Assembly: GCA_002269645.1 (NCBI GenBank)
Contig: NIVC01001777.1
Location: 91,429 to 155,428 of the forward strand
DNA: 64,000 nucleotides
Reading direction: 5' to 3'
Origin: Macrostomum lignano
Taxonomy: Eukaryota
Shown here: positions 1 to 49,640 of the stretch, piece by piece
Position numbering within the stretch: the stretch's first letter is position 1
Layout of the letters: each line of letters begins with the position of its first letter
Program-made: the position numbers and the translations under genes
The notes under the pieces: generated by a model
Told to the model about the DNA's origin: nothing
Databases searched by the model: none
Seen by the model: only the letters and a program-made list of their open reading frames with translations

Positions 1-447
1 AACTGAAAAGATGTTTCGGCACCCGCCACCAAGACTCGCAAATGAAAACAATGAAAATGCGCAAGACCGCAAACTGAAATAAGTTACCACTAAACATCAA
101 AAAATATAAAAATTTGCAACTCAGCTTAAACTCGCAATTTTAATAAAGTCGAAAATGGTTGACAGAAAAAACCCATCACCGTAACTTAACAGAAACTTCA
201 AACAGCTCAAACTCAAAGGAAAAACAAATGCGCCAACTGCGCTCCAAAAAAATCTGATCCCAAAAAAAACCATGAACAAAAACAGACACAACCAATAATC
301 AAAAAGGCAACGGCTTGAAAAGCCCAAAACTGGCAGAAAGCCTACTGAACGCACACGATACAGTACAAACAATTTGAAAACTCAGCGTAAACTCGGAAAA
401 GTCCGGAAAAGAAAACAAACAGTTCTTAAGCAAATGATCAACTCCTC

Positions 448-1983
448 TCACTCGAGATAGCACAGTTTGCTCACAGGCCGCACGAATACCGTCCCACCGA
501 CCTGGACCTTGGCCACCCGGACTCGATTGTCTGAACCTGGGTAGACTTCGACTACTCGTCCCAACGGCCAGTGTCCCCGCGGTGAGTCTGCTTTGATGAC
601 GAGAACGACATCACCTGGCTGTAAATCACGCTGCGGTCCCGCCCACTTGGCTCTCGGCTGCAACCCTGGCAGCCATTCGCGCATCCAGCGTCGCCAGACG
701 TGCCTCACGAGTTCTTGGACGCGCCGCCACCGCCGCCTCGGGTCAGCCGCGACGTCGTCGGGCACATCCGGCGCGAATTGTCCACCAGCTTGACCGTGCA
801 GGAAATGGTTTGGCGTTAGTGGCTCTTCGTCTCTCGGATTCGCCGATTGATAGGTGATGGGGCGCGAGTTGATAAGCGCCTCCGCTCCAGTGATCGCTGA
901 CTGAAGCTCCTCGTCGGTGACATCTGCGCTGCCCAGAATCGCGTGTAGCGCTCGCTTCGCAGCCCGAATCATCACCTCGTGGGCTCCACCAAAGTGCGGG
1001 GCGGCTGGCGGCTGGAAGTTCCACTTGACTCGCTGCTTGGATGTCTCGCGACTGATCCTTGTCCTGTCCAGCTCCTCCAGAAGTCGCAGTTCATCTGCAC
1101 CTTTTACAAAGTTGCCACCGTTGTCAGAATACATAGCCTTGGGTAAGCCACGCCTGTTCACCATTCGGTAGAAGGCGTTCAAGAAAGAGTCCGCGTCAAG
1201 GCTGTAGGTCATCTCGAGGTGTACCGCTCGCGTCTCGAGGCATGTGAACAGCGCCAAATAGCGTTTCTGCCTCTTCTTAAATCGGCCTTGAATAGTGACG
1301 AACGGCCCTCCCATGTCGACGGCTACGTTCGTGAAGGCTTTTAAGGATCCTGCGACACGGGCATCAGGCAGTGGCGCCATCTGTTGTACGATGGGACGAG
1401 CTTTCTCTCTCTTGCACACAGCGCATTCAACCTCCCACTCGCGAATAGCTTCCCGAGCACAGATAACCCAATACTTGGCTGACAGCGCCGCCAGAGTTTG
1501 GTTAGTCCCACCATGGCTCTGCTGCTCGTGATATTGTTTGATGATCAGCTTGGTGATCCAATGCTTCCGCGGCAAAATAGATGGATGTCTTGCTGCAAAT
1601 GGCGCCTGTGGCCTGAATTTCAACCGGCCATCCACTCGTAGGACTCCTGCTGCATCACGTACCGGCTGCAAGCACCGCAGCTTCTTCTCGTTCACTGTAT
1701 CCGTCTTGAACGCTTCCTCCTGAGCTAACCTTACCAAACGCTCCTCGACCTCCTCGAGCTCATCCACCAACAGCTCACCGCCGCTCCGCTGATACTTCTC
1801 CGTCTGACAGTTCCGAATGAACCGCAACACCCAAGCGAAGACGCGCTGCAGTCGATGGAAACTAGAGAATCGCTCTGGTTTGAGTCGCCAGCCTGTCTTG
1901 TCTTCTTCATCGGTGGTGACCAGACATACGGGCTCTGCACAACGCTTCTGGATGCTTGCTAGCCTCTTCGACGGGTATTCGCC
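448..1983 (-). CDS. BEL/Pao integrase (HHCC, DDE core, C-terminal DUF5641-type domain), after frameshift 2
   Basis: Frame open from 1983 (ERFSSFHRLQRVFAWVLRF). Motifs: HEQQSHGG...CAVC, VDMGGP, SDNGGNF, GGAHE, NSRPIT, WRRWMREWLPGL, WPLGRV. Confidence 0.95.
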   Translation of the reverse strand, partial: GEYPSKRLASIQKRCAEPVCLVTTDEEDKTGWRLKPERFSSFHRLQRVFAWVLRFIRNCQTEKYQRSGGELLVDELEEVEERLVRLAQEEAFKTDTVNEKKLRCLQPVRDAAGVLRVDGRLKFRPQAPFAARHPSILPRKHWITKLIIKQYHEQQSHGGTNQTLAALSAKYWVICAREAIREWEVECAVCKREKARPIVQQMAPLPDARVAGSLKAFTNVAVDMGGPFVTIQGRFKKRQKRYLALFTCLETRAVHLEMTYSLDADSFLNAFYRMVNRRGLPKAMYSDNGGNFVKGADELRLLEELDRTRISRETSKQRVKWNFQPPAAPHFGGAHEVMIRAAKRALHAILGSADVTDEELQSAITGAEALINSRPITYQSANPRDEEPLTPNHFLHGQAGGQFAPDVPDDVAADPRRRWRRVQELVRHVWRRWMREWLPGLQPRAKWAGPQRDLQPGDVVLVIKADSPRGHWPLGRVVEVYPGSDNRVRVAKVQVGGTVFVRPVSKLCYLE

Positions 1984-4826
1984 TCAGTAGTTTCTGGCGC
2001 AACTGGAATCGGCATTTCTGGCCAATCGTTTGAGCACCTCGCCAAGAATCCAGGGCCGTTCCACCACAGCTCGTTGTCCATCAGCTCTTGCACACTGCAG
2101 CCACGGGATGCCACATCCGCTGGATTCAGACCTGTTGGAACGTACCGCCATTGATTTGGCTGCACCTGCTGCTGGATGAAGGCGACTCGGTTCGCAACGA
2201 AAGGCTTGAACGCTCTACTCTGCCTGCGAATCCACCAAAGCACATTGTGACTGTCACTCCAAAACACCACAGACTCAATCGCGATCTCCAACGCCTCGGC
2301 CACTGCCCTTGCGAGCCGAAGTCCTAGGACTGCCGCCATCAACTCCAGTCGAGGGATGCTCACCGCCATCAATGGTGCTACCTTAGCCTTTGCAGCAACG
2401 AAACGGACCGTCGTCTTACTCATCGTTTCGCTCCGCAGATATACGACGGCTCCGTAGGCCTCTTGCGATGCGTCTACAAACGAGTGAAGTTCGATGGATC
2501 CGTTGTCTGGACGCAGACACCGAGGCACGGCTAGTCTCGTAGCTTTGGAGAGCTCACTGGTCCACTGAAACGCTTGATCAGCCAACTCAGGATCCAACGC
2601 TTCATCCCACCCAACACCTTGTTGCCATGCCAACTGCAGCATTATCTTTCCTGTGATAACTACCGGAGCTAGGAAGCCACAGGGGTCAAACACCTCGGCC
2701 ACACAGCGCAAAAGCAGTCTCTTTGTCATCATCTTGCCGCTAGCATTCGACTCGCTGATGGAAATTCCTAGGACGTCCTCTTTCGCATTCCAATTCACTC
2801 CAAGCGCCTTAGCGGTTCGGGCCTCACCTTTCAATAGCAACTCGGCGCGTTCTGCGCGGTCCTCGACTGGAACGTGTTGCAGCACTTCTAACGAATTCGA
2901 CATCCATTTGCAAGCTCGCATCCCTGCCTTGCTCCATAATTCTACGAGTTGTTGGAAGAGTTTCACCGCTTGGCCAACGGTTTCTACGGAGTCTAGACTG
3001 TCGTCCATATAAGTGGAATGCAGCACGGTGTTGGCCGCCAGCGGCAGCTGTTGCTGATAGTGTCGCGCATTCTCCTGTGCCACAAACTGAGCCAGAAACG
3101 GAGAGCAGTTTACGCCAAATACCACACTGCAGAACTCATAGCTCTTCGGCGTTTGCTTCAAGTCTAAGTCTCGCCACAGAAATCGGAAAAATCTTCTGTC
3201 CTCCGGCGCAATTCGAACTCTCAGATACATCTCCTCGATGTCGGCTGCTAGCGCCACGGGATGCTTCCGGAACCGTAGGAGCACCTTTAGCAAATCCTGC
3301 TGCAACTTCGGTCCCGTATGAATGGTGTCATTTAGGCAGACCCCATTGCTCCGAGCCGCTGCATCAAACACAATTCGAACTTTGGTCGTCTCCTTATCGG
3401 CCCGCACTATCGCGAAATGCGGCAAGAACCACTGGCCAGCCTGACTTGGCTCGCTGATGCCGACCTCCCGCACATAGCCTTTTGCCAGATGCTTGTCTAT
3501 CACAGCCTGGTACGCCTTCGCTAGCTCCGGGTTCTTCAGCAAGCGCTTTTCTGTGCTGACGAGACGCTGTAGGGCAGCTTCGTTGTTCATAGGTAGTTCT
3601 TCCGGATTCTTTTTCCAAGGAATCGCCACTTGAAACCTGCCGTTCTCCATCTTCAAGGATGCTCGTGTCGCTTCTACGATCTTTTGATCTTCAGCGGACA
3701 TTCTGGCCTGCTGTCCTCCATCTGGCACTTCATCGATCTCCCACATCTTCCGCAGAAGATCAGATGCCTCGTTCTCCGCCGTCACCGTAAAGAATGTCTG
3801 CTGCTGCTGCTCTTCTGCAGTTCCTACTTGATTCACTGGTCCAACGCAGGTCCACCCAATTGGCGTCAGTCTGGCAATCGGCTCTCCAGGTTGCCCACCT
3901 ACTTCGCGACAGGCAAAGTGCAAGTCTGCATTGTCCACACCAATGAGCATATCCACAGTCTGCTTCCCTTTAATTTTGTCGAACGGCACGCCCCTCAGAT
4001 GAGCCCAACGCTTTGCAAGCTGGCTCCAATCTACGGCTTCCATCCCACCGGTCACTTTCTCAGTTGTGTGGGCCGTAACTGTGGCACGAAAGGCGCCGTC
4101 CAGACTGCGGATGTCGACCTCAACCGGAACCGTCTGAAAGGTGCTCACCTGGCCGTTCAGAACCTTTACCGTCATCGGTTCGAGGTTGCCTTCCAAGCCG
4201 AGTTCCGCTGCAACGTCAGAGTTCAGGTACGACCGGGTGCTAGCGTCGTCCAGCAAGACATTCACTCGGACTTCCCGACCGCCGTTGGATAAAATCACGG
4301 GCACAGTCCTCAGCGCTATTGACGGCGATGTTCTGGCCAGTAAAGTGCATGCCTCTTGCGGCTCTTGAACTGTGCTCTTCTTCTCCTGGAAGGACTTTGG
4401 TCTTTCGATCGTTTTGGGCGACCCCCCTTCATGCGGATTCGCCGTTGTCGCCGCCGGCCCTCGTTGATGCAGCAGCCGATTATGGTTTGCTTTGCAGCCA
4501 TCAACACCGCACACTCTCGCTCGCTTGCACGCACCGGCTAGATGGTTTGCTCCCAAGCAGCAGAAGCACAGGCGCTTGTCACGAACCATCGCCCATCTGG
4601 CTCCAGGTTCCATTCGTTGAAACCTTGGGCAGCTCCAAACTCCGTGCTGTTCTCCGCAGAGACCACAACCTTTTCGCCCTTCCGCCTGTTCTTTGTTTTG
4701 GCTATTCGAATCATTCGTCTTCACAAAAAACGAGCGTGCTGTGGCTGCCCCTCGGGAAACAGTTTTCTTGGCTTTTACACTGTCGTGCCGTCCGGTCTCA
4801 CCGGAGAAGCCACGCCTCTTACCGCC
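1959..4826 (-). CDS. BEL/Pao Zn knuckles, aspartic protease, reverse transcriptase and RNase H
   Basis: Frame open from 4826. Motifs: CGLCGEQHGVWSC, CFCCLGANHLAGAC, CGVDGCKANH, LLDDASTRSY (protease), LAADIEEMY and YMDD (RT), HSFVDASQEAYG and IPRLELMAA (RNase H). Confidence 0.95.
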   Translation of the reverse strand, partial: GGKRRGFSGETGRHDSVKAKKTVSRGAATARSFFVKTNDSNSQNKEQAEGRKGCGLCGEQHGVWSCPRFQRMEPGARWAMVRDKRLCFCCLGANHLAGACKRARVCGVDGCKANHNRLLHQRGPAATTANPHEGGSPKTIERPKSFQEKKSTVQEPQEACTLLARTSPSIALRTVPVILSNGGREVRVNVLLDDASTRSYLNSDVAAELGLEGNLEPMTVKVLNGQVSTFQTVPVEVDIRSLDGAFRATVTAHTTEKVTGGMEAVDWSQLAKRWAHLRGVPFDKIKGKQTVDMLIGVDNADLHFACREVGGQPGEPIARLTPIGWTCVGPVNQVGTAEEQQQQTFFTVTAENEASDLLRKMWEIDEVPDGGQQARMSAEDQKIVEATRASLKMENGRFQVAIPWKKNPEELPMNNEAALQRLVSTEKRLLKNPELAKAYQAVIDKHLAKGYVREVGISEPSQAGQWFLPHFAIVRADKETTKVRIVFDAAARSNGVCLNDTIHTGPKLQQDLLKVLLRFRKHPVALAADIEEMYLRVRIAPEDRRFFRFLWRDLDLKQTPKSYEFCSVVFGVNCSPFLAQFVAQENARHYQQQLPLAANTVLHSTYMDDSLDSVETVGQAVKLFQQLVELWSKAGMRACKWMSNSLEVLQHVPVEDRAERAELLLKGEARTAKALGVNWNAKEDVLGISISESNASGKMMTKRLLLRCVAEVFDPCGFLAPVVITGKIMLQLAWQQGVGWDEALDPELADQAFQWTSELSKATRLAVPRCLRPDNGSIELHSFVDASQEAYGAVVYLRSETMSKTTVRFVAAKAKVAPLMAVSIPRLELMAAVLGLRLARAVAEALEIAIESVVFWSDSHNVLWWIRRQSRAFKPFVANRVAFIQQQVQPNQWRYVPTGLNPADVASRGCSVQELMDNELWWNGPGFLARCSNDWPEMPIPVAPETTEANTRRRG

Positions 4827-6271
4827 TCACACGCTACTGTCATGTACTCTGCCTCCGTCAGAAGCCATCGATGCAACGTTCTGAGCGAATCTTCTTTCCT
4901 AGCTTCTCCGATCCACCGATGAAAACGAGCTAGGGTTTCGGTTGGCAGCTTCTTTTGCACTCTCAAGTACATAAGTCCATTGTTGCTTAGCTCACTCTCT
5001 CGCCCTGCAGCCTGTAGATTAACTACCGTAACATCCAGCAAGTCGGCCAGCTTTTTTAATTGACTTGCATTCTCTATCTGAATAGGTTGGAAACTATCCA
5101 AGTCCTCCAGTGCCAGCATCAGTCTTCGTCTCTCTCCACCATACTCCCGCTCAAGCCTTTCCAGAGCCGCTTTGTAGGCGAACTCCGAGTAGCCAAGATT
5201 CGCAACAAGTTTTAATGCCTCTCCTCGCAGCGACTGGCGCAATTGCAACAACTTATAGGCTTCTGAAGATGGCGAGGCATGCACGCAGGCATAGAAAGCC
5301 GCCCGCCATCCTTCAAACTCCCGTTTGTCTCCACTAAACACCGGTATCGCAACTCTCTGCAACTGCCTCCACATATCCTGACCGATTCTTTCCTCAGCCC
5401 AAGCTTTCGCTGTACATTCTGCTGCGGCGGCCGGTGAAGCCCCAATTGGCGAATTAGCTCCACCGTACATAGCTTGGATACCTAGCTGTCCGCGGGGTTG
5501 GTTAGAATCAGCGTGGTCACACTTGCCGCCAGTTGGGGTGGGTGGTATTGATTTTTCTCCGGCCTTTACTCTCTCACCCCCTTGCTCAGCGCTCCTTAGT
5601 TGATCTGACACTCCCCCAATTAAGGGGTTGACTGAAGGGTCGGCTTGAACCATGGGGTTGGCGACTGGTACTGAGTACGCAGCTTGCGATTGGACGGCCG
5701 CTTCTACCCGTAGTTGAGAGGAGTACAATTGATCATTTGCACTCGCTGACGTCTCTGCCAGTCTTAGCGCATCCAATCTGACATCTAACTCGCGCTGCCT
5801 CTCTGCAAACTCCTGCTGCATTCTGCGCTCCTCCTCCTCCATCTCTATCCGCTGCCGCCTGACTGCCTCCAACTCCTTCTGTCGCATCTCTTTCTGCTCG
5901 ATCTCCCTCGACTCTAGTCGTACCTCTCGTTCCCTCTTGCGCAATTCTCTCAGCAAATTTACAATCTCACCGTACTCAGTCTCCAGCTTCTCCAACTCCT
6001 TTACTGTCTGGACTTGCACTGGTAGATTCCCGACGACCTCGGGCAGAATCGCTTGTAGCACCGCACTAACTCGCTCGTAGTGGTCATCCAGAGTGCCGGC
6101 CAGCGGTTCCACGTCCGCTAAAGTAGCTCCGTCCGAGCCCAATACCTTCAGTAGACGATTCCGTTGCTTCGTGAACGCGCACTTGTCGACCGCTTTTCTG
6201 GCCTTCAGCGAAATGAGACGGCTGTCTCCCTCCGGCACTTGTTCTTGCATCTCTGCTTCTTCATCAGACAT
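4775..6271 (-). CDS. BEL/Pao Gag (coiled-coil N-terminus plus DUF1759-type capsid region), ending at frameshift 1
   Basis: 498-aa ORF with IPVFSGDKREFEGWRAAF...KLLQLRQSLRGEALKLV...YKAALERLEREYG, typical of Pao gag. Confidence 0.9.
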   Translation of the reverse strand: MSDEEAEMQEQVPEGDSRLISLKARKAVDKCAFTKQRNRLLKVLGSDGATLADVEPLAGTLDDHYERVSAVLQAILPEVVGNLPVQVQTVKELEKLETEYGEIVNLLRELRKREREVRLESREIEQKEMRQKELEAVRRQRIEMEEEERRMQQEFAERQRELDVRLDALRLAETSASANDQLYSSQLRVEAAVQSQAAYSVPVANPMVQADPSVNPLIGGVSDQLRSAEQGGERVKAGEKSIPPTPTGGKCDHADSNQPRGQLGIQAMYGGANSPIGASPAAAAECTAKAWAEERIGQDMWRQLQRVAIPVFSGDKREFEGWRAAFYACVHASPSSEAYKLLQLRQSLRGEALKLVANLGYSEFAYKAALERLEREYGGERRRLMLALEDLDSFQPIQIENASQLKKLADLLDVTVVNLQAAGRESELSNNGLMYLRVQKKLPTETLARFHRWIGEARKEDSLRTLHRWLLTEAEYMTVACEAVRGVASPVRPDGTTV

Positions 6272-6325
6272 TTTTTACCAATGAAGTAGAACCACAAGTA
6301 GAACCACAAGTAGAACCACAAGTAG

Positions 6326-6343
6326 AACCACGCTCTGCTACCA
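6326..6343 (-). promoter_or_regulatory. Primer-binding site complementary to the 3' end of initiator tRNA-Met
   Basis: TGGTAGCAGAGCGTGGTT, 2 nt after the LTR-terminal CA. It matches the tRNA-iMet 3'-end pattern (...AACCnnnCTCTGCTACCA). Confidence 0.85.
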
Positions 6344-6345
6344 GA

Positions 6346-6615
6346 TGTTTTGATGGTTCATTCAATAAATTGAGTCTTCGCAGTAAGCGACTATTTTTCG
6401 GCTACTAGCCAACCGAACAAAACAACCAGCGTGCGCACTCTCTCTGGAGAGGCTGATAACTATATATTGCAATAATTTTAAATAAATGGGGTGGGTGCTG
6501 CTGAACATTATAAATGGGGGCTGGGGCTGAAACGTACGTATCAAAATCTCTGCTATGAAAGTTACGCGTAGGTGAATGAAAAGTACACTCGTACATGTAA
6601 GCCAACTCCTAAACA
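6346..6615 (-). repeat. 5' LTR (270 bp) of the BEL/Pao element
   Basis: Minus strand starts TGTTT and ends AAACA (inverted termini), followed by TC and the PBS. The outer edge abuts a 35-bp minisatellite at AATGT (candidate 5-bp TSD). TATATA at 6467-6462. The second LTR is not available to confirm the outer boundary. Confidence 0.75.
6359..6393 (-). other. Spliced-leader (SL) exon-like sequence embedded in the LTR
   Basis: Minus strand reads TAGTCGCTTACTGCGAAGACTCAATTTATTGAATG. The Macrostomum lignano SL as recalled is CGGTCTCTTACTGCGAAGACTCAATTTATTGCATG: 31/35 identical, 25 contiguous. No GT donor or SL-RNA intron part follows, so this is not an SL RNA gene. Confidence 0.85.
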
Positions 6616-7173
6616 AATGTGGTGTATTGGGGCAGGTTGTTGAGTAGCTTAATGAGGTGTATTGGGTCAGGTTGTTGAGTAGCTTAATGAGGTGTATTGG
6701 GTCAGGTTGTTGAGTAGCTTAATGTGGTGTATTGGGTCAGGTTGTTGAGTGGCTTAATGAGGTGTATTGGGTCAGGTTGTTGAGTAGCTTAATGTGGTGT
6801 ATTGGGTCAGGTTGTTGAGTAGCTTAATGTGGTGTATTGGGTCAGGTTGTTGAGTGGCTTAATGAGGTGTATTGGGTCAGGTTGTTGAGTAGCTTAATGA
6901 GGTGTATTGGGTCAGGTTGTTGAGTAGCTTAATGAGGTGTATTGGGTCAGGTTGTTGAGTAGCTTAATGAGGTGTATTGGGTCAGGTTGTTGAGTAGCTT
7001 AATGAGGTGTATTGGGTCAGGTTGTTGAGTAGCTTAATGAGGTGTATTGGGTCAGGTTGTTGAGTAGCTTAATGTGGTGTATTGGGTCAGGTTGTTGAGT
7101 AGCTTAATGTGGTGTATTGGGTCAGGTTGTTGAGTAGCTTAGTGTGGTGTATTGGGTCAGGTTGTTGAGTAGC
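6616..7173. repeat. 35-bp minisatellite, ~16 copies
   Basis: Unit AATGAGGTGTATTGGGTCAGGTTGTTGAGTAGCTT. Confidence 0.95.
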
Positions 7174-7841
7174 TGGATAGTGTTTAAGCCAGAAAAGATT
7201 TTCCATCAGGTCTCAGGGGCAATTTCAGATTGTTAATACAAGGACCACTAGAAGTTGCCGTTGAATCAGGACGCAACACTCGTAAATATTGCTAAATTAT
7301 TTGAAGGCGCGCTTGCTTACTTGTATTTAGCGATGCTTGCCTTCAAAAAAGCATTCTACTCGACTGTTTTAAAGAAGGCTGCTTTACATTTGAGGCTCAG
7401 AAGCTCCAGAATAGGTGTATTTATAATTTATTAAGGCTTTAATCTGTTAAACTTCTACTGGTCCTTGTGTCAATATTTCCAAGCAAGTTAGCAACAATCA
7501 GGCTTATTCAATATTCAGCTTATTAGAATGCGAGCAAGCAAAGCGAATTAATGTTTTTAGAAATCATGCACTTATAAAGTATACCTAGGCTTTTACTGGC
7601 GTTATGATTCTATTTGGTTAGCATCAGCAAAAAGCGTCTTTAGCAATAGCAAATGCAGCAAATTATCCATCAATGAGTAGGTAAGTTCCGGTTGTTGTGT
7701 TTGCTTTGCTGATTAGAACTACAAAGCAGGCCTTCATCTAACTCTGCGCACTTACAACATTCGACTCTTTCCATTAACGGATTCGCAAAGCCTGCAAATA
7801 TGATCGATTGTTTTAAATGCGCTCGTACTACTGGGTTTAAG

Positions 7842-14129: not shown

Positions 14130-17100
14130 ATGGAACTACGCGTTGGCAACAGATACCGGCTGGGTAGAAAGATTGGCAGCGGCTCATTTGGCGACATCTA
14201 CTTGGGCACTGATATTACTAATGGGGAGGAGGTTGCTATTAAGCTGGAGTGCGTGCGCACTAAGCATCCTCAGCTGCATATTGAGAGCAAAATCTACAAG
14301 CTCATGCAAGGCGGAGTTGGCGTGCCCATTGTGAAATGGTGTGGCACAGAAGGTGACTACAATGTGATGGTGCTTGAGCTGCTAGGCCCCAGTCTTGAAG
14401 ATTTGTTTAACTTTTGTGGTAGAAAATTTAAACTGAAGACTGTACTGTTGTTGGCCGATCAGCTGTTGAATCGAATTGAATTTATTCACAGCAAGAACTT
14501 CATTCACAGGTGAGAAATTCTGCTAAGTGATGGTTTTCATTATTGATATTCTCTTTATGTTTGTTGAAGTTCCACAATTTGGGATCAGAATCCCAGGTTA
14601 GGATCAGAATCACAGTTTGGGATCAGAATCACAGTTTGGGATCAGAATTCCAGTTTAGGATCAGAATCCTAGTTTAGGATCAGAATCACAGTTTAGGATC
14701 CGAATCCCAGTTTAGGATCAGAATCCCAGGTTAGGTCTAGGATCAGAATCCCAGGTTAGGTCTAGGATCAGAATCCCAGTTTGGGATCAGAATCATAGGG
14801 AATCTTGGGATCAGAATCCTACTCAGTTCGGTATCAAAATCCTAGTTTGGGATCAGAGAATCCCTGTTTGGGATCAGAATTCCTTTGAGACGCCACTGTT
14901 TAGAAATGAATTCCAAGCTCCCTTAGGAATGAATTTCGTTTTACCTTTTTCTTGAGTTCAAATTCCTAGGTACCATATGTAGCTGATCTCGAGAATATAA
15001 AAATCAGACAATTTACTTATTTTGTCACTCGCAGAGACGTTAAGCCGGACAACTTCCTTATGGGCCTCGGTAAGAAAGGCAATCTGGTGTACATCATCGA
15101 CTTTGGTTTGGCCAAGAAGTACAGAGACGCCAGGACTCACCAGCACATTCCATACAGGGAGAATAAGAACCTCACTGGGACTGCCAGATATGCTAGCGTT
15201 AACACCCATCTTGGCATTGGTGAGTGTGTCCGATTAATTTCACTCCAAAATCTAGTAGTCTCACCCGAAATCTCACTCCAAAATCTAGTAGTCTCACCCG
15301 AAATCTCACTCCAAAATCTAGTAGTCCCACCCGAAATCTCACTCCAAAGTCTAGTAGTCTCACCCGAAATCTCACTTCAAAATCTAGTAGTCTCACCTGA
15401 AACCTCACTCCAAAATCTAGTAGTCTCACCCGAAATCTCACTCCAAAATCTAGTCTCTCACCCCAGAATCTAGTGGTCTCTCACTTGATATCTCACTCCA
15501 AAATCTAGTGGTCTCTCCCGAGGTCTCCTGAGGTAGTGGTCCCCCGAGGTCTCACCTACCATAATACAACAGTCTCACCCGGAATCTCAACCACCATAAT
15601 TCAACAGTCTCACCCGAGGTCTCACCTACCATAATACAACAGTCTCATCCGGAATCTCACCCACCATAATCCAACAGTCTCACCCGGAATCTCACCAACC
15701 ATAATCCAACAGTCTCATCCGGAATCTCACCCACCATAATCCAACAGTCTCACCCGGAATCTCACCCACCATAATCCAACAGTCTCACCCGGAATCTCAC
15801 CCACCATAATCCAACAGTCTCACCCGGAATCTCACCCACCATAATCCAACAGTCTCCCCCGGAATCTCACCCACCATAATCCAACAGTCTCACCCGGAAT
15901 CTCACCCACCATAATCCAACAGTCTCCCCCGGAATCTCACCCACCATAATCCAACAGTCTCATTCGGAATCTCACCCACCATAATCCAACAGTCTCATTC
16001 GGAATCTCACCCACCATAATACAACAGTCTCACCCGAGGTCTCACCCACCATAATACAACAGTCTCACCCGAAATCTCACCCCATTCACAGAGCAAGCCC
16101 GCCGAGACGACATGGAGTCCCTAGGCTACGTGTTCATGTACTTCCTGCGCGGTATCCTACCCTGGCAGGGTCTGAAAGCCGCTACAAAGCGTCAAAAGTA
16201 CGAGCGGATTAGCGAGAAAAAGATGCAAACCCCAGTTGAAACTCTGTGCCAGAATTATCAGGCAGAGTTTGCCACCTATTTGAATTATTGTCGATCTCTG
16301 CGATTCGAAGATAAGCCAGATTATAGCTACTCTAGACAGCTGTTTAGGAATCTGTTCCATCGAGAGGGATTCACTTACGATTACGTGTTCGATTGGAATA
16401 TGCTCAAGTTCGGACAGCCTGCGGCGGCGGCCATCGGAGGCCAAGGATCCGGTGCTCCAGGTGCAACAGCCAACTCTGCTCAGGCTGTAGGAGGTAAGTC
16501 AGAATTATTAAATGAGTCTGCTCAGTTTGTTTATCTTACTAAATTACTAAACTTTGTAATCTCATGTCTACTTGAGGATTTGTTTTAACAACATTTTGAT
16601 TGGGTCTCGCAGTGATCCACTGAAGAGCCATGACTCATAGGGGTAGTGGGGTGACCCACTGAAGGGTCATAGGGTAGTGGGGTGACCCACTGAAGGGTCA
16701 TGACTCATTGGGTTGGTGGGGTGACGCACTGAAAGACCATGACTAATGCGGTGACCCACTAAAGGGCCATGACTCATGGGGTGACCTACTAAAGGGCCAT
16801 GACTCATGGGGTGACCTACTAAAGGGCCATGACTCATGGGGTGACCTACTAAAGGGCCATGACTCATGGGGTGACCTACTAAAGGGCCATGACTCATGGG
16901 GTGACCTACTAAAGGGCCATGACTCATAGGGTAGCGGGCGACCCACAGAAACCCATGACTCATGAGGTAGCGGGTGACCCACTGAAGGGTCATGACTCAT
17001 GGGGTAATGGGGTGACCCACTGAAGGGTCATGACTCATGGGGTAATGGGGTGACCCACTGAAGGGTTATGACTCATGGTAATGGGGTGACCCACTGAAGG

Positions 17101-19104: not shown

Positions 19105-20133
19105 GATAATCGCCCTCCAATCCCTCTTTGAGAATCGCCCTCCAATCCCTCTTTGAGAATCGCCCTCCAATCCCTCTTTGAGAATCGCCCTCCAATCTCT
19201 CTGAGAATCGCCCTCCAATCCCTCTTTGAGAATCGCCCTCCAATCCCTCTTTGAAAATCGCCCTCCAATCTCTCTTTGAGAATCGCCCTCCAATCTCTCT
19301 GAGAATCGCCCTCCAATCTCTCTTTGAGAATCGCCCTCCAATCTCTCTTTGAGAATCGCCCTCCAATCTCTCTTTGAGAATCGCCGTCCAATCCCTCTGA
19401 GAATCGCCCTCCAATCCCTCTTTGAGAATCGCCCTCCAATCTCTCTTTGAGAATCGCCCTCCAATCCCTCTGAGAATCGCCCTCCAATCTCTCTTTGAGA
19501 ATCGCCCTCTAATCCCTCTGAGAATCGCCCTCCAATCTCTCTGAGAATCGCCCTCTAATCCCTCTGAGAATCGCCCTCCAATCTCTCTGAGAATCGCCCT
19601 CCAATCTCTCTTTGAGAATAGCCCTCTAATCCCTCTGAGAATCGCCCTCCAATCTCTCTTTGAGAATCGCCCTCCAATCCCTCTTTGAGAATCGCCCTCC
19701 AATCCCTCTGAGAGTCGGCCTCCAATCTCTCTGAGAATCGCCCTCCAATCTCTCTGAGAATCGCCCTCCAATCCCACTTTGAGAATCGCCCTCCAATCTC
19801 TTTGAGAATCGCCCTCCAATCTCTCTTTGAGAATCGCCCTCCAATCTCTCTTTGAGAATCGCCCTCCAATCTCTCTTTGAGAATCGCCCTCCAATCCCAC
19901 TTTGAGAATCGCCCTCCAATCTCTCTTTGAGAATCGCCCTCCAATCCCACTTTGAGAATCGCCCTCTAATCTCTCTTTGAGAATCGCCCTCCAATCTCTC
20001 TTTGAGAATCGCCCTCCAATCTCTCTTTGAGAATCGCCCTCCAATCTCTCTGAGAATCGCCCTCCAATCTCTCTTTGAGAATAGCCCTCTAATCCCTCTG
20101 AGAATCGCCCTCCAATCTCTCTTTGAGAATCGC
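19105..20133. repeat. 23-25-bp minisatellite
   Basis: Unit GAGAATCGCCCTCCAATCTCTCTTT, ~40 copies. Explains the ORFs called at 19031-20044. Confidence 0.95.
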
Positions 20134-21715
20134 CGTAAGCGAGTTAATGTTTTCAGAAAACTCGTGAAATTTTGCTACGATAGCAGATTACATCGTGTTA
20201 CTTACAGTAGTCAATGCACAGTTAATATTGTTGCTATTTGCAGTGTCAAATACTTGAATTGGGCACCGTTCGTGTGCCCTGATCTTTCTCATGCGCAGAA
20301 CTGCAGTCTTTCCGGTGTTTTTTCCTATCCTTTATTCTCTCTGCTGATACGGGCTTGTCACAGTGCGAAATAAAAATTTCATGAAGATGCAATTCAATAA
20401 AAAATCATTGCTGTTTACTTGTAAAAATTGTTTAGTTTATCATTTGTATCTCTTATTCTATTCTATTTCATGTCTTTTATGACATTAAACATTTTATCTA
20501 ACTCTATTATGTAACAGGTTTTTTTGGCGTCTGTGTGCACTTCTCTGTTGGCAAATAGTTTTACTATATTATCATGGTTAAACCAACACTTTTCTACAAA
20601 CTTGTGTACAGATTTTTCTGTGCAAGTATAAAAGTCTTAGTCCAGTTGCCTGACATACTACATACTACTACATACTCCATTTTTTTCCTTCAATTTGATC
20701 AATTGATCGCTTAATTGTTACAATACAATGCAATTTCAACTTCTTAACTGTGCGCATTTTGCTTTTTGTGTCCGTTAAAACCAAGAAGCAATTGGAATTG
20801 TATCTATTTATTTATTTGTTTATTGAAGAACAAACTATCCAGCTTTAATACGTTTTTGTTTGCGTACTTTTCTACTTATAGTAGCTTGTAACTGTTTTTG
20901 TTCCGGCACATATCTATCAAAAATAAAGGGGAATTTTTTGCCATGTTACGTTTTACACGTGCTTAGTATACTACTTTTTAGAGCAGTGGAGCATTGTGAC
21001 AGCGTACGTAACTAATTAATCCAAAAATCTGATTTGCAGAAGCTATTGCTATCTATTTGTTTACCGTGTTTAGCCTACCAAATATAATTTTTGTTTTGTT
21101 GTTTTCTGACAACTTATGCGTAAAGCGTTGTCGATTTTGATTTTGTTCGTCGTTATGATTGAAAAATGAAAACCAGCAGCTCTCTAAACTTCAAACTGTG
21201 CATCAACGAGGCGCAAAAAACTCAGTTAAATTGTATTATTTGCCTACCTAAAATTTTAATAATTTTAGAAAACAGTGGAACACGTTAGCCTGAGAATTTG
21301 CTGTGAGCATCGAACCAAGCGTATCATGCAGAGTTGATATTTTGAGGGGCTAAGATTTATAAGGCAGTGACGCAACCACTAGGGGGTGGCTGCCTCTCTT
21401 TAGGACTTACGTAGACTTAAGATTACGTATTAAAAATATTTCTTAAATTATTAAAAATATAAATTATTAAAATATTGAATCAAAAATATTCAATATTTAA
21501 ATTCAAGCGCGTATCAAGGTATCTTGCATGCAGTAGCGTACATGTACGTAGTAGCGTATTATATTCTTTGCATGGGGATACGAGCTGGGATATACTCCAT
21601 GTTTCGGTGTTTTTAATACTTTAATAAAGCAAGTTTCCGGGCATGTATGTCCCAGCCATAAGTCCAGGCTGTCATTTAAGTCAATTACACAAATCTCGTT
21701 AATTTCGTGTACCAT

Positions 21716-26238: not shown

Positions 26239-27487
26239 TTCGGTTGTTGAGAAAGTTCTCGCGGTTTCTAGAAAATTCGATCCTAGAACTTTATGGAACA
26301 TTCTAGAAGCTTACTGTGTGGGTATATATTGAGGGTGGGTGTGTGCAATCTTGACAGACTACTTCTCATGATTGTTGCTATCAAAGCCAGATCAACTACA
26401 TGGATCTCTCTCGACCCTATATTTGTGGTCTGTTACTCTATGACTTCAAATTTGGCATCAAAGCAGCCAAATCAAGCCGCTGCATTAACAGTGCATTTAG
26501 TGCTGGTACTGTGTCTGAACACACTGCGCAAGATTGATTTGCTCGCTTTCGCCAGATTTCAGCCTCGAAGATTTACCCCGGTCAGGGCGTCCTGAGGTGG
26601 ATGATGACCACCTGCGCACACTCATTGAGGCTGACCCCTGACAAACCACGCGTGAGTTGGCGCAAGTCCTTGGGGTAGACCGTCAAACGATCGCCACTCA
26701 CTTGCATCAACTGGGCAAAGTGCACAAGTTGACTCAATGGGTACCCCATGAATTGTCCGATCATGACTGCGAACGCAGGGCAGAGGCGGCCACTACTCTT
26801 CTCTCCTATCGGCGCACGCACAATGGGCTGAAGTCAATTGTTACTGGCGATGAAAAATGATGCTTATATGTGAACATCAAGCGTCAATGGTCGTGGGTGG
26901 ATGCTGACGCGACCCCTGAGCCACAGCCTAAAGCCGGACTCCACCCCCGCAAGGTCATGCTGTGCATTTGGTGGGACTGCAAAGGTGTGATCCTCCACGA
27001 GCTGCTGCCAACCAACACATCGATTACGGCCGACCTGTACTGCCAACAGCTGGACAGATTGGCCGCCGCCATCGCACAGAAGCGACCAAATCATGGCCCG
27101 GTCCGATTCCTGCACGATAATGCCCGCCCCCACACTGCCAAGATGACTCGCCAAAAGTTACTGGACCTTGGCTGTCGACTGGTGCCTCATCCTCCGTATT
27201 CCCCCGACCTGGTGCCTAGTGACTACCATACCATCTCTTCTTGGCCCTGACCAATGCCTCGACGAGCAAAACCGCTGATGAGGAAGCCTTGGATAACTGG
27301 CTCAACGAGTTTTTTGCCTCGAAACCTGAGAAATTCTAGGCTGATGGCATTATGTCTCTGCCTGAAAAATGGCAAAAGTGATTGATGCAGATGGCAATTA
27401 CTTCATTTCTTAAAGTCCTTCCATATTTAAAAAAACTCAGTTTGGAAGAAGGTTCGAGAAACCGCGAGAACTTTCTCGACAACCGAA
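26239..27487 (+). mobile_element. Full-length defective mariner (DD34D), 1249 bp
   Basis: ~31-bp TIRs TTCGGTTGT(T/C)GAGAAAGTTCTCGCGGTTTCT, flanked by CA (mutated TA) and TA. Confidence 0.93.
26400..27410 (+). pseudogene. Mariner transposase pseudogene
   Basis: MDLSRPYICGLLLYDFK...SLEDLPRSGRP...WVPHEL...IVTGDEK*CLY...FLHDNARPH...HPPYSPDLVPSDYH, with several stops and frameshifts. Confidence 0.92.
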
Positions 27488-28026: not shown

Positions 28027-28839
28027 ATGCGAGTCAAAAAGATTCACCAGTGTGATCAGTGTGGCAAGATTTATCTTAAAAAGTCTCGCTTAACTGAACA
28101 CCTGATCACTCACAGTAACAAAAGGCCATTTCAGTGCAATGTTTGTGGAATGAGATTCAAAACCGCGTTCAATGTTAAATCTCATCTGCGTGTTCACACA
28201 GATGAGAAACCATTTCACTGCAAGGTGTGTGACAAAGCCTTTCGTCAGTTACAGTATCTAAAAGTTCACATGAGAAGTCATACTGGTGAAAAGCCCTACT
28301 CGTGCAAATTTTGCGAGAAGAGTTTCTGCCATAACTCAGGTTTGGCTGAGCACACCCGAGTGCACACTGGCGAAAAACCATACCAGTGTCGAGTGTGCGG
28401 CAAGAGATTCTCAAAGTCTAGTAGCTTGTCTACTCATTTAAAAACGCACACAGGTGAAAAACCTCACCAATGCGAAGTGTGCGGCATGAAGTTCGCATTA
28501 CCTTACGTACTGAAACGTCATTCTCGATTGCACACTGGCGAAAAGCCATTCGAGTGCAATGTGTGCGGCAAAAAGTTCAACGAAGGCTCCAACCTAGCGA
28601 AGCACAATAGAACTCACACGGGTGAAAAACCCTACCAATGCAAGGTGTGCGGCAAAGCGTTCAGCGAGTCGACTAACCTGAACAAACACGCCAGGATGCA
28701 TACAGGTGAGAAGCCTTACGAGTGCAAAGTTTGCGGCAAGAAGTTTAGCCAATCTGGCCACCTCAAGGATCACTCCAAGGTGCACGCTGAAGTAGAGGAG
28801 CCTGGTCAGGATTCACTACAGGAGGATCTCTATGAATAA
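28027..28839 (+). CDS. C2H2 zinc-finger protein, 9 tandem fingers, 270 aa
   Basis: Nine CxxC-x12-HxxxH fingers, most with TGEKP linkers. Intact ORF. Acceptor TTCCAG 23 nt upstream with an in-frame TGA before the ATG. Confidence 0.92.
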   Translation: MRVKKIHQCDQCGKIYLKKSRLTEHLITHSNKRPFQCNVCGMRFKTAFNVKSHLRVHTDEKPFHCKVCDKAFRQLQYLKVHMRSHTGEKPYSCKFCEKSFCHNSGLAEHTRVHTGEKPYQCRVCGKRFSKSSSLSTHLKTHTGEKPHQCEVCGMKFALPYVLKRHSRLHTGEKPFECNVCGKKFNEGSNLAKHNRTHTGEKPYQCKVCGKAFSESTNLNKHARMHTGEKPYECKVCGKKFSQSGHLKDHSKVHAEVEEPGQDSLQEDLYE

Positions 28840-33847: not shown

Positions 33848-34884
33848 TCACACTTCTCCATTCGAATCGCGAGTCTGCACTTCGATGCAAGCCACAGTTT
33901 CAACAGCTGGCGTAGATCCTGTTCTAGTTGATTCCTTCAGCTCCACTGCTTCTACTTGCTCTTGGCAGAGCGGTTGTGCGTCCTGTTGTTGCTCGAGTTT
34001 GCGTTTGTTTTGCGGGTGGCGCTGCTGCTGCTGCTGCTGCTGCCGTCGCCGTCCAAGCCAAGAGCAGCAGTGGAAAATTGAAGAAAAAGTTTGCCGAAAC
34101 TGGCTTGACATCATCGAATAGATGAAGAAGTTCACTGGATAAGTGACCAATATGGTGAAGTTGATGATTGGCACCGCGTAGCCCATGAACTCGCGAGATG
34201 TTAGGCTCAACGCGTACAATGACATCACCACCGTCATCGGAAGTTCCACAATCATAAAAATACCAACCACCAGCGTTAGCATTGCCGTCGTATTATTCTG
34301 CTCCTCCCGACGTCTTGTACCACCGCCGCCGTGGTTGTCGTGTTGCTGGTTCTGCTGCTGTCGAGCTTTCGGACTTAGCAGATTTCTGCGACGTCTGGCT
34401 GCCTTGCGTAATCCGTTAATGAGCAGCGAAGTGAACACGATCAACAGAATAGACGGGACCAGATTTACCAGAAGGATTCGAGCATAGATTATCACCATGA
34501 AGATTGGCTGCTCAGACAGAAGATTGCACGAAATCAGTAGTTGCGGTCCGTCAGTTCCTTGGGCCGGACTAGCAATATGGTAGGGTCCATCTATGTAGAA
34601 CCAGGCGCACATGAAGGCCGTCACTAAGACTAGAAGAATTATCACGGACGCGACCGAGATTCTGTTTGTACACAGTCGTTGAACAGACATCGGAAAGGTG
34701 ATGTAAATCCAGCGTTGAATGGCTAGGATCACGGTGAGCCAGATTGACACGGTGTGGAAGATAGTCGGCAAAGTAGAGCTCATTAGGCTGAGCAGGTTGG
34801 CGGCGGCTGGACTGTCACAGAGGTGAATTACGGTCCATTCGTGCGCGAATTCGGATAGCAGGTACCATGGCAACGGGAAGATTC
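33848..34884 (-). CDS. Rhodopsin-class peptide GPCR (sex-peptide/MIP-receptor, DMSR/Srw-like), last coding exon (TM2 end to C-terminus)
   Basis: Acceptor CCGCAG at 34885. Motifs GIFPLPW, LPTIFHTVSIWLTVILAIQRWIYI, NLVPSILLIVFTSLL, TTAMLTLVVGIFMIVELP, TYPVNFFIYSMMSSQFR. Joins the 51786-52146 exon in phase (about 465 aa in total). Confidence 0.9.
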
Positions 34885-46349: not shown

Positions 46350-49300
46350 AGAAGAAGAGAGACGGACAAGAGAAGAAAGGCAGAGAGGGAAGAAGATGGA
46401 GGCAGAGAAGCGAGGACAGGACAGATGAAAGAAGGAGACGAAGGTATATAGAGATAGAAAAGGGAAAGTATACGGGGAGAGTAGGCATGAAAATTAGAAA
46501 GAGGGAAGGGAGGAAGAGAGAAAAATAGGAGGGAAACAGACAGGAGGAGAGAGGCAGACAGGTAAGGAGAGAGGCAGACAGGTAAGGAGAGATGCAGATA
46601 GATGAAGGAGAGGCAGACAGGTAAGGAGAGATGCAGATAGATGAAGGAGAGGCAGACAGGTAAGGAGAGATGCAGATAGATGAAGGAGAGGCAGACAGGT
46701 AAGGAGAGATGCAGATAGATGAAGGAGAGGCAGACAGGTAAGGAGAGATGCAGATAGATGAAGGAGAGGCAGACAGGTAAGGAGAGATGCAGATAGATGA
46801 AGGAGAGGCAGACAGGTAAGGAGAGATGCAGATAGATGAAGGAGAGGCAGACAGGTAAGGAGAGATGCAGATAGATGAAGGAGAGGCAGACAGGTAAGGA
46901 GAGATGCAGATAGATGAAGGAGAGGCAGACAGGTAAGGAGAGATGCAGATAGATGAAGGAGAGGCAGACAGGTAAGGAGAGATGCAGATAGATGAAGGAG
47001 AGGCAGACAGGTAAGGAGAGATGCAGATAGATGAAGGAGAGGCAGACAGGTAAGGAGAGATGCAGATAGATGAAGGAGAGGCAGACAGGTAAGGAGAGAT
47101 GCAGATAGATGAAGGAGAGGCAGACAGGTAAGGAGAGATGCAGATAGATGAAGGAGAGGCAGACAGGTAAGGAGAGATGCAGATAGATGAAGGAGAGGCA
47201 GACAGGTAAGGAGAGATGCAGATAGATGAAGGAGAGGCAGACAGGTAAGGAGAGATGCAGATAGATGAAGGAGAGGCAGACAGGTAAGGAGAGAGGCAGG
47301 CAGGAGAAGGAGAGAGGCAGACAGGAGAAGGAGAGATGCAGATAGATGAAGGAGAGGCAGACAGGTAAGGAGAGATGCAGATAGATGAAGGAGAGGCAGA
47401 CAGGTAAGGAGAGATGCAGATAGATGAAGGAGAGGCAGACAGGTAAGGAGAGATGCAGATAGATGAAGGAGAGGCAGACAGGTAAGGAGAGATGCAGATA
47501 GATGAAGGAGAGGCAGACAGGTAAGGAGAGATGCAGATAGATGAAGGAGAGGCAGACAGGTAAGGAGAGAGGCAGGCAGGAGAAGGAGAGAGGCAGACAG
47601 GAGAAGGAGAGATGCAGATAGATGAAGGAGAGGCAGACAGGTAAGGAGAGATGCAGATAGATGAAGGAGAGGCAGACAGGTAAGGAGAGATGCAGATAGA
47701 TGAAGGAGAGGCAGACAGGTAAGGAGAGATGCAGATAGATGAAGGAGAGGCAGACAGGTAAGGAGAGATGCAGATAGATGAAGGAGAGGCAGACAGGTAA
47801 GGAGAGATGCAGATAGATGAAGGAGAGGCAGACAGGTAAGGAGAGATGCAGATAGATGAAGGAGAGGCAGACAGGTAAGGAGAGATGCAGATAGATGAAG
47901 GAGAGGCAGACAGGTAAGGAGAGATGCAGATAGATGAAGGAGAGGCAGACAGGTAAGGAGAGATGCAGATAGATGAAGGAGAGGCAGACAGGTAAGGAGA
48001 GATGCAGATAGATGAAGGAGAGGCAGACAGGTAAGGAGAGATGCAGATAGATGAAGGAGAGGCAGACAGGTAAGGAGAGATGCAGATAGATGAAGGAGAG
48101 GCAGACAGGTAAGGAGAGATGCAGATAGATGAAGGAGAGGCAGACAGGTAAGGAGAGATGCAGACAGGTAAGGAGAGATGCAGATAGATGAAGGAGAGGC
48201 AGACAGGTAAGGAGAGATGCAGACAGGTAAGGAGAGAGGCAGACAGGTAAGGAGAGATGCAGACAGGTAAGGAGAGATGCACACAGGAGAAGGAGAGAGG
48301 CAGACAGATGAATGAGAGAGGCAGACAGGAGAAGGAGAGAGGCAGACAGGAGAAGGAGAGAGGCAGGCAGGAGAAGGAGAGATGCAGACAGGAGAAGGAG
48401 AGAGGCAGGCAGGAGAAGGAGAGAGGCAGACAGGAGAAGGAGAGATGCAGATAGATGAAGGAGAGGCAGACAGGTAAGGAGAGATGCAGATAGATGAAGG
48501 AGAGGCAGACAGGTAAGGAGAGATGCACACAGGAGAAGGAGAGAGGCAGACAGAAGAAGGAGAGATGCACACAGGAGAAGGAGAGAGGCAGACAGGAGAA
48601 GGAGAGAGGCAGACAGGAGAAGGAGAGAGGCAGACAGGAGAAGGAGAGAGGCAGACAGGAGAAGGAGAGAGGCAGGCAGGAGAAGGAGAGAGGCAGACAG
48701 GAGAAGGAGAGATGCAGATAGATGAAGGAGAGGCAGACAGGTAAGGAGAGATGCAGATAGATGAAGGAGAGGCAGACAGGTAAGGAGAGAGGCAGACAGG
48801 AGAAGGAGAGAGGCAGGCAGGAGAAGGAGAGAGGCAGACAGGAGAAGGAGAGATGCAGATAGATGAAGGAGAGGCAGACAGGTAAGGAGAGATGCAGATA
48901 GATGAAGGAGAGGCAGACAGGTAAGGAGAGAGGCAGACAGGTAAGGAGAGATGCAGATAGATGAAGGAGAGGCAGACAGGTAAGGAGAGATGCAGACAGG
49001 TAAGGAGAGATGCAGATAGATGAAGGAGAGGCAGACAGGTAAGGAGAGATGCAGACAGGTAAGGAGAGATGCAGATAGATGAAGGAGAGGCAGACAGGTA
49101 AGGAGAGATGCAGACAGGTAAGGAGAGATGCACACAGGAGAAGGAGAGAGGCAGACAGATGAAGGAGAGAGGCAGACAGGTAAGGAGGGAGGCAGATAGA
49201 TGAAGGAGAGAGGCAGACAGAAAAAGGAGAGATGCAGACAGGTAAGGAGAGATGCAGATAGATGAAGGAGAGGCAGACAGGTAAGGAGAGATGCAGACAG

Positions 49301-49640
49301 GTAAGGAGAGATGCAGATAGATGAAGGAGAGGCAGACAGGTAAGGAGAGATGCAGACAGGTAAGGAGAGATGCACACAGGAGAAGGAGAGAGGCAGACAG
49401 ATGAAGGAGAGAGGCAGACAGGTAAGGAGGGAGGCAGATAGATGAAGGAGAGAGGCAGACAGAAAAAGGAGAGAGGCAGACAGGAGAAGGAGAGATGCAC
49501 ACAGGAGAAGGAGAGAGGCAGACAGATGAAGGAGAGAGGCAGACAGGTAAGGAGGGAGGCAGATAGATGAAGGAGAGAGGCAGACAGAAAAAGGAGAGAG
49601 GCAGGCAGGAGGACAGGTAGGAGAAGGAGAGAGGCAGACA
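46350..49640. repeat. 3.3-kb composite 39-bp/21-bp purine-rich minisatellite
   Basis: 39-bp unit GAGAGGCAGACAGGTAAGGAGAGATGCAGATAGATGAAG and 21-bp unit AGAAGGAGAGAGGCAGACAGG. Explains the three >1000-aa ORFs. Confidence 0.97.

Follow-up and report, generated by a model that had tools for sequence, protein, structure and literature searches.

The left part of the window (the whole 64-kb stretch of DNA analysed here) carries on its minus strand a nearly intact element that, by its domain content, is a BEL/Pao LTR retrotransposon. Its gag ORF (4775..6271, 498 aa) contains a DUF1759 domain and has the N-terminus MSDEE... in common with the gag protein of a related element on contig L008. The first part of pol (1959..4724, 921 aa) comprises the protease, the reverse transcriptase (RT) and the Pao peptidase_A17 region and lies in a frame different from that of gag; the second part (448..1830, 460 aa), separated from the first by a single frameshift (near 1960-1990, past the RNase H region), is the integrase with its H2C2 zinc finger and DUF5641. 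Pfam matches were obtained for DUF1759 (2.7e-13), Peptidase_A17 (1.7e-48), RVT_1 (2.5e-9), Integrase_H2C2 (2.2e-8) and DUF5641 (2e-28). At E <= 1e-20 the integrase has 1,187 homologues, and the closest matches, 65-73% identical and derived from JGI sample 3300040801, provided two outgroup contigs, L008 and L009. The best match of gag is an M. lignano UniProt entry with 66% identity over the DUF1759 part only, and no exact protein match for the window gag is on record.

The sequence that follows the integrase stop (447..1) has no similarity to 6346-6700 and contains no PPT; the 3' LTR would lie beyond the left edge of the window, and the readings given below concern one LTR of one copy. This tail is T-rich and ORF-less and extends over more than 447 nt, versus 160-200 nt in L008 and L009; a long 3' UTR, an insertion and a rearrangement of the 3' end are all conceivable. 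The 64-kb window contains no solo LTR, its self-matches coming from a 35-bp satellite only, and searches by gag and integrase homology found no sister copy in the collections covered.

Minisatellite arrays with periods of 9-40 bp and from tens to more than 100 copies fill the window (e.g. 15550-16082, 19108-20134, 46537-49598 and 61496-63132) and yield long spurious ORFs; the element stands at the edge of one such array (6616-7174). A casein kinase 1 gene was recognized by translation motifs in three exons on the plus strand (14130-14513, 15060-15230 and 16112-16420), and its introns are filled by 33-35-bp satellites. Further along the plus strand are an ORF (26870-27250) in which a mariner/Tc1-like transposase C-terminal motif (...HDNARPHTA...PYSPDL.PSDYH) was identified by eye, probably a transposon fragment, and a single-exon C2H2 zinc-finger gene with at least eight fingers (28027-28839). 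The minus strand encodes a rhodopsin-type or Srw-like GPCR (33848-34873), the closest relatives of which, from a trematode, a copepod and an oyster, are 37-41% identical.

Upstream of gag the element has a 5' LTR of 270 bp (6346..6615, minus strand), which reads TGTTTAGGAG...CATCAAAACA and is bounded by 5-nt terminal inverted repeats, TGTTT/AAACA. Its first bases, TGTTT, mark the exact point where the adjoining satellite (6616..7174, 16 copies of a 35-bp unit) stops in the middle of its last unit, and its final AAACA is followed by TC, the primer binding site (PBS) and gag. The same architecture was observed in both outgroup contigs. L008, the integrase of which is 65% identical at the amino acid level to that of the window element, has the order integrase, 3' UTR, purine tract GAAGGGGGGAGA, LTR of 254 bp (TGTTCGGAAG...GAACA), TAAAT, TGGTAGCAGAGCGTGGTTCTAC and the gag start ATG-MSDEE..., so that its LTR ends are TGTTC...GAACA versus TGTTT...AAACA in the window; in L009, AAGGGGGGAA is followed by TGTTCAGAAG at the LTR start. 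The homologous order in L008 and L009, together with the exact break of the satellite, identifies 6346-6615 as the 5' LTR, as the preliminary description of this DNA had assumed, and the satellite as flanking DNA. The region of L008 that holds the integrase, PPT, one LTR, PBS and gag (349-2763) is a circular permutation of an LTR element, which could represent a one-LTR circle, a tandem pair or the joining of both ends through the LTR by the assembler.

The PBS (TGGTAGCAGAGCGTGG, 6328..6343, minus strand) is separated from the LTR by a 2-nt spacer, TC (6344-6345), and a stretch of 22 nt beginning with it (6343-6322) is identical to positions 2364-2385 of L008, located 6 nt after the L008 LTR. 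The complement of the PBS, ...CTCTGCTACCA, appears similar to the 3' terminus of initiator tRNA-Met, the putative primer; the 64-kb window itself contains no tRNA gene. Next comes a tandem array (6284..6331) of a 12-nt unit, TGGTTCTACTTG as read on the element strand, which is repeated four times without mismatch and begins within the PBS; in L008 only the first 9 nt of the unit occur, in one copy (TGGTTCTAC). On the other side of the spacer, the terminal 13 nt of the LTR (AACCATCAAAACA, 6346..6358, minus strand) are native to the element and represent the presumed integrase recognition end. Comparison of the last 11 nt of this LTR with the LTR end of L008 revealed seven matching positions, the terminal AACA included. 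The role of such terminal bases in integration follows from the general biology of LTR elements.

Directly joined to these 13 bases is a sequence of a different kind. Examination of the minus strand from 6393 to 6346 gave TAGTCGCTTACTGCGAAGACTCAATTTATTGAATGAACCATCAAAACA, followed by TC (6345-6344) and TGGTAGCAGAGCGTGG (6343-6328), letter for letter as in the preliminary description, which had recognized here the spliced leader (SL) of M. lignano. The leader quoted there agrees with the published 35-nt M. lignano SL, CGGTCTCTTACTGCGAAGACTCAATTTATTGCATG (PMC8629364), and the match of 31 of 35 positions with a perfect 25-nt core (6387-6363) holds against the published sequence. The copy is in sense orientation, also as proposed. 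With up to 3 mismatches allowed, its core occurs nowhere else in the 64-kb window (0 expected from 100 shuffles); blastn-short gives the SL match an E value of 2e-9 and detects no second significant SL-like stretch over the 64 kb.

The similarity extends beyond the segment originally described. The SL assembled from transcripts of M. cliftonense and M. hystrix is 45 nt long, with additional sequence at its 5' end (GCCGTAAAGACGGTCTC...GCATG; PMC10468722 supplement), and the window sequence follows it for 9 nt further 5', to position 6402, beginning with GCCG. Here GCCGAAAAATAG of the window aligns with GCCGTAAAGACGG, the start of the 45-nt exon both in these transcripts and in two SL RNA genes described below, and of 12-mers drawn at random from the window, just 0.2% show an equally good match to the SL 5' end. 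The SL relic as a whole (GCCGAAAAATAGTCGCTTACTGCGAAGACTCAATTTATTGAATG, 6359..6402, minus strand) is thus 44 nt long, is 39/45 identical to the true exon with one gap, contains no intron and falls within the last 57 bases of the 5' LTR, 15 nt before the PBS. It differs from the 45-nt exon by five substitutions and one indel, and five of these six differences are located in the first 16 nt; among the 30 3'-most positions of the SL, 29 are intact.

For comparison with genuine SL RNA genes, metagenome and GTDB collections were scanned for the SL core, which yielded five contigs starting with the SL and two with an internal SL (L005 and L007); a scan of a viral contig collection for the SL core, the PBS and the SL-plus-PBS pattern gave zero matches. 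The five SL-initial contigs are trans-spliced mRNAs from a metatranscriptome, and one of them (L001), read past the leader, looks like an mRNA for the voltage-dependent anion channel VDAC. L005 and L007 contain genuine SL RNA genes, in which ...ctttGCCG marks the upstream border and the 45-nt exon is followed by GTAAGACACCG..., a stem-loop, ATTTTTAG and a second stem-loop; the border between exon and donor is ATG|GTAAG, and the intron has an Sm-like site. The two genes (L005, 615-720; L007, 1589-1700) have identical 45-nt exons and different introns and flanks. The exon is likewise identical across three Macrostomum species, the two environmental SL genes and the five SL-capped transcripts. 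Since the gene-encoded exon is 45 nt long, the published 35-nt M. lignano SL looks truncated by 10 nt at its 5' end. L007 (JAGQZA010000190.1) was assigned to a Flavobacteriaceae MAG, a binning error that placed flatworm DNA in a bacterial genome: the contig carries a eukaryotic U1 snRNA gene (1121-1283, 151.7 bits) about 300 bp upstream of its Macrostomum-type SL RNA gene, a linkage of U1 and SL genes.

The window copy has the exon alone in common with these genes, the similarity starting at the first base of the exon and ending at the last. Its upstream flank is tagta, versus cttt in the genes, and downstream the terminal ATG runs into AACCATC, in agreement with the earlier remark that no GT donor follows the SL. 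The other features of an SL gene (intron, Sm site and gene-type upstream flank) are equally absent around it, and an Rfam scan of the 64-kb window gave no match. A copy with neither the intron nor the upstream flank of the gene derives from a mature, spliced SL; on sequence grounds, such exon-only boundaries are the signature of the spliced leader and not of an SL gene or pseudogene. No SL-like sequence was found in the LTR of L008, so the SL is a gain in the lineage of the window element. In L008 a T-rich tract followed by CAG occurs 16 nt before the LTR end, close to the position equivalent to the junction in the window, and lends weak support to an acceptor at that place in the clade.

The relic is embedded in a leader with several recognizable features. 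A TATA-like box (TATATAG, 6460..6466, minus strand) is located 58 nt upstream of it, and a similar box occurs at a similar distance in L008. The box suggests a transcription start near 6436, in which case the SL relic would be internal to the 5' UTR; it is from this box only that we infer the assignment of R and U5 within the LTR. The ATG of the SL opens a uORF of seven codons (MNHQNIW*, 6338..6361, minus strand) in frame with gag. As previously noted, it reads ATG AAC CAT CAA AAC ATC TGG TAG (6361-6338) and terminates within the PBS. Native LTR sequence is also predicted to pair with the cap-proximal 15 nt of the relic in an RNA hairpin of 16 bp (6389..6427, minus strand; dG -11.2 kcal/mol; z -3.49), and one of 200 shuffles folds as well. 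This local hairpin alone stands out, the folding of the whole leader being ordinary (z -1.13). The true SL, put in place of the relic, pairs just as well, and therefore the substitutions in the relic are not compensatory. The upstream arm of the hairpin resembles a transition-rich inverted copy of the SL 5' end, which could be due to chance or be a snap-back relic.

The divergence of the relic can be compared with that of the element that carries it. The three ORFs make up 1,879 codons without an in-frame stop; as 4.4% of random substitutions create stops, the divergence accumulated after insertion lies below approximately 1.2%. At this bound, five substitutions and one indel in 45 nt have a probability of about 2e-4. 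The differences are too many for 1.2% divergence, which suggests that the relic is older than the present insertion and was inherited through replication; it probably diverged while being passed on in this way. As the relic lies 5' of the PBS, inheritance through replication means residence in the LTR. The age argument loses strength if native sequence or strand-transfer scars make up the first 12 nt, since two differences in 32 nt (P ~0.06) are then left, and should the host have an SL that deviates from the Macrostomum consensus, the relic might be an exact and recent copy of it. The clustering of the differences in the 5' third is not predicted by uniform neutral decay and could reflect constraint on the 3' part.

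In our view the SL segment is most likely the fossil trace of an element RNA that acquired an SL by trans-splicing and was then reverse-transcribed. This origin was already put forward in the preliminary description, and it remains the best reading of an exon-only SL that lies within a true LTR and is joined to its native end. The direct junction to 13 native bases resembling the LTR end of L008 points to an acceptor in the U5 of the element itself and not in a host mRNA. A precedent for trans-splicing of the RNA of an LTR element is known from Cer1 of C. elegans (PMC3315495). In the proposed scheme, an acceptor located some 13 nt before the 3' end of the LTR would have received the SL in an ancestral BEL/Pao transcript, giving an RNA that read SL, 13 nt, TC and PBS and continued into the remainder of the element. 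Starting from the PBS, the reverse transcriptase of the element would then have copied this leader to the cap end of the SL, or near it, to form the minus-strand strong-stop DNA. With no homology between the SL end and the R region of the 3' LTR, first-strand transfer would have been non-homologous, either illegitimate or based on microhomology, and would have landed in that R region. On completion of reverse transcription, both LTRs of the new copy would have contained U3, a partial R, the SL and the 13 terminal nucleotides. The requirement for these 13 bases in integration and for the PBS in priming accounts for their survival, and only an RNA whose splice site lay 5' of both the integrase-recognition end and the PBS could yield viable progeny, which explains the position of the relic. 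The order of events, the transfer point and the neutrality of the relic we infer from the established replication of LTR elements. Today the relic is most likely a passenger in the R-U5 leader that is transcribed inside the 5' UTR, where it gives a uORF and one arm of a hairpin.

Several other explanations have to be weighed against this one. The SL could have been captured in the very replication cycle that made the present copy, as a one-off event and not a family trait, with the differences due to a variant host SL gene, to errors of reverse transcriptase near the cap or to later mutation. Such an event is compatible with the lack of a sister copy in the collections searched and of an SL in the relative L008, and the differences are indeed concentrated at the cap-proximal end, where strand transfer takes place. 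However, six differences in 45 nt are too many beside 1,879 stop-free codons, and a variant donor has to be reconciled with the invariance of the exon in every Macrostomum species, environmental SL gene and SL-capped transcript compared above; we therefore hold a one-off capture to be rather unlikely. An SL RNA gene or pseudogene lying beside the element or interrupted by it (as with SLACS, CZAR or NeSL-1), a chance match, or a cDNA or assembly chimera would be in keeping with a core that is exact over 25 nt and are, taken together, hardly credible. The gene is contradicted by its missing donor, intron, Sm site and upstream flank and by the empty Rfam scan, a targeting insertion by the Pfam assignment of the element to the LTR type and not the non-LTR type, and chance by the shuffles and blastn-short; a cDNA chimera would show a perfect SL with no LTR upstream.

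Very improbable, too, is the possibility that 6403-6615 is not LTR sequence and that the locus is a LINE-mediated processed retrocopy of a trans-spliced element mRNA, starting at the SL and preceded by unrelated DNA. This would fit the model of relict SLs in dinoflagellates (PMC5585692, PMC6050394), and the 3' end of the element lies outside the window. The upstream block, however, opens with TGTTTAGGAG at the satellite boundary, the inverted complement of the AAACA end; this start matches the PPT-adjacent LTR starts of L008 and L009, and the TATA-like box is similarly placed in the window element and L008. A copy dead on arrival also predicts equal decay of the SL and the ORFs, and the decay is unequal.

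A further question is whether the SL segment has become a selected, family-wide module of the LTR that provides R-like homology for the replication of trans-spliced genomic RNA, mimics host SL mRNAs in translation, or shields the element from piRNAs. The intactness of 29 of the 30 3'-most SL positions beside a decayed 5' part would be consistent with selection, as would the retention of the ATG with its uORF, the participation of the relic in a hairpin whose stability 199 of 200 shuffles do not reach and the apparent age of the relic relative to the copy. The structure of the junction speaks against it. Terminal redundancy, which had been suggested as one function, presupposes an acceptor placed exactly where the relic ends on its 3' side; the border there is ATG|AAC and contains no AG, so a new SL cannot replace the relic exactly, and this function is structurally disfavoured. 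The two AGs that had been named as possible acceptors just upstream are present (6406-6405 and 6403-6402 in plus-strand numbering), but as acceptors on the minus strand both read TAG, unlike the M. lignano trans-splice acceptor motif [T/C]TNCAG. Their use would give an SL in tandem with the relic SL, as envisaged earlier; no tandem was seen, blastn-short finding one SL in the window. Mimicry of an SL in translation finds no support, as a trimethylguanosine cap cannot come from a genome-encoded SL, and neither does shielding from small RNAs, as 44 nt cannot protect a 6-kb RNA. A selected module therefore appears distinctly unlikely. If it were nevertheless real, the segment could allow this BEL/Pao lineage to live with, or even profit from, SL trans-splicing of its genomic RNA, the SL acting as R-like homology during strand transfer, or else gag translation could be tuned via the SL-derived uORF and hairpin; either role would be the first case of a retrotransposon domesticating a host spliced leader.

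As a likely fossil of trans-splicing, the locus offers a clean, base-resolved case of SL trans-splicing colliding with the replication of an LTR element, in which the SL replaced most of U5 and spared the 13 terminal bases and the PBS needed for integration and priming. It makes a passing remark of the flatworm literature testable, namely whether trans-spliced retroelement RNAs are reverse-transcribed and fixed, and adds the testable question of first-strand transfer without R homology. Macrostomum is well suited for such tests because transgenesis and genome resources exist. In practical terms, SL-based read trapping and SL-gene finders will falsely take LTRs of this kind for SL sites or genes.

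Physical association of retroelements with SL sequences is known in several forms. SLACS, CZAR, CRE and NeSL-1 are SL-gene-specific non-LTR retrotransposons that insert into SL RNA genes. Like the window element they are joined to SL sequence, but their insertion interrupts the exon and leaves intron and promoter in place, whereas the window LTR element carries a spliced SL without gene context. Retroviruses capture cellular sequence by non-homologous strand transfer or recombination, so that host RNA sequence taken up by template switching is then inherited with the element, as proposed here; in contrast, the piece captured in the window is a 44-nt non-coding leader that would have been spliced on before reverse transcription and lies in the LTR. 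Cer1, a Ty3/gypsy element of C. elegans, is another LTR retrotransposon whose RNA is SL1 trans-spliced in an animal; however, SL1 is found on its 2.4-kb subgenomic RNA only and not on the 8-kb genomic RNA, and no SL copy in its LTR has been reported (PMC3315495).

Relict SLs are also known in retroposed genes of dinoflagellates (Slamovits and Keeling 2008, as cited in PMC12582326; PMC5585692; PMC6050394). There, too, an exon-only SL became fixed in the genome via reverse transcription of trans-spliced RNA. Those loci are retrocopies of host genes, often tandem-recycled, in which the SL marks the 5' boundary and unrelated DNA lies upstream; the window SL, in contrast, is preceded by LTR sequence, lies within the LTR, and copying would place it at both ends of a mobile element. 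The closest parallels come from the same phylum. In parasitic flatworms, 597 SL-like loci with a partial leader, mainly associated with LTR and LINE elements, were discarded and the same origin was proposed for them (PMC12582326), and in S. mansoni six exonic SLs merged to transposable elements led to the suggestion of trans-spliced, retro-transcribed elements (PMC5832876). The earlier statement that no described SL-bearing LTR family was known does not stand in view of these SL fragments in flatworm LTR and LINE elements. In these loci, as in the window, the leader is the sole part of the SL RNA and occurs in or next to a retroelement; they were singled out by having the leader only, within an LTR/LINE or at most 500 bp from one, and the window copy consists of the leader only and lies inside an LTR. 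They were, however, filtered as noise, with a partial SL and an undescribed anatomy, whereas the window SL is full length and has a hairpin in the R region on one side and the terminal 13 nt of the LTR on the other, in a free-living Macrostomum-like worm. The phenomenon itself has thus already been reported, and what is new here is its resolved anatomy in a nearly intact element of a free-living Macrostomum-like flatworm.
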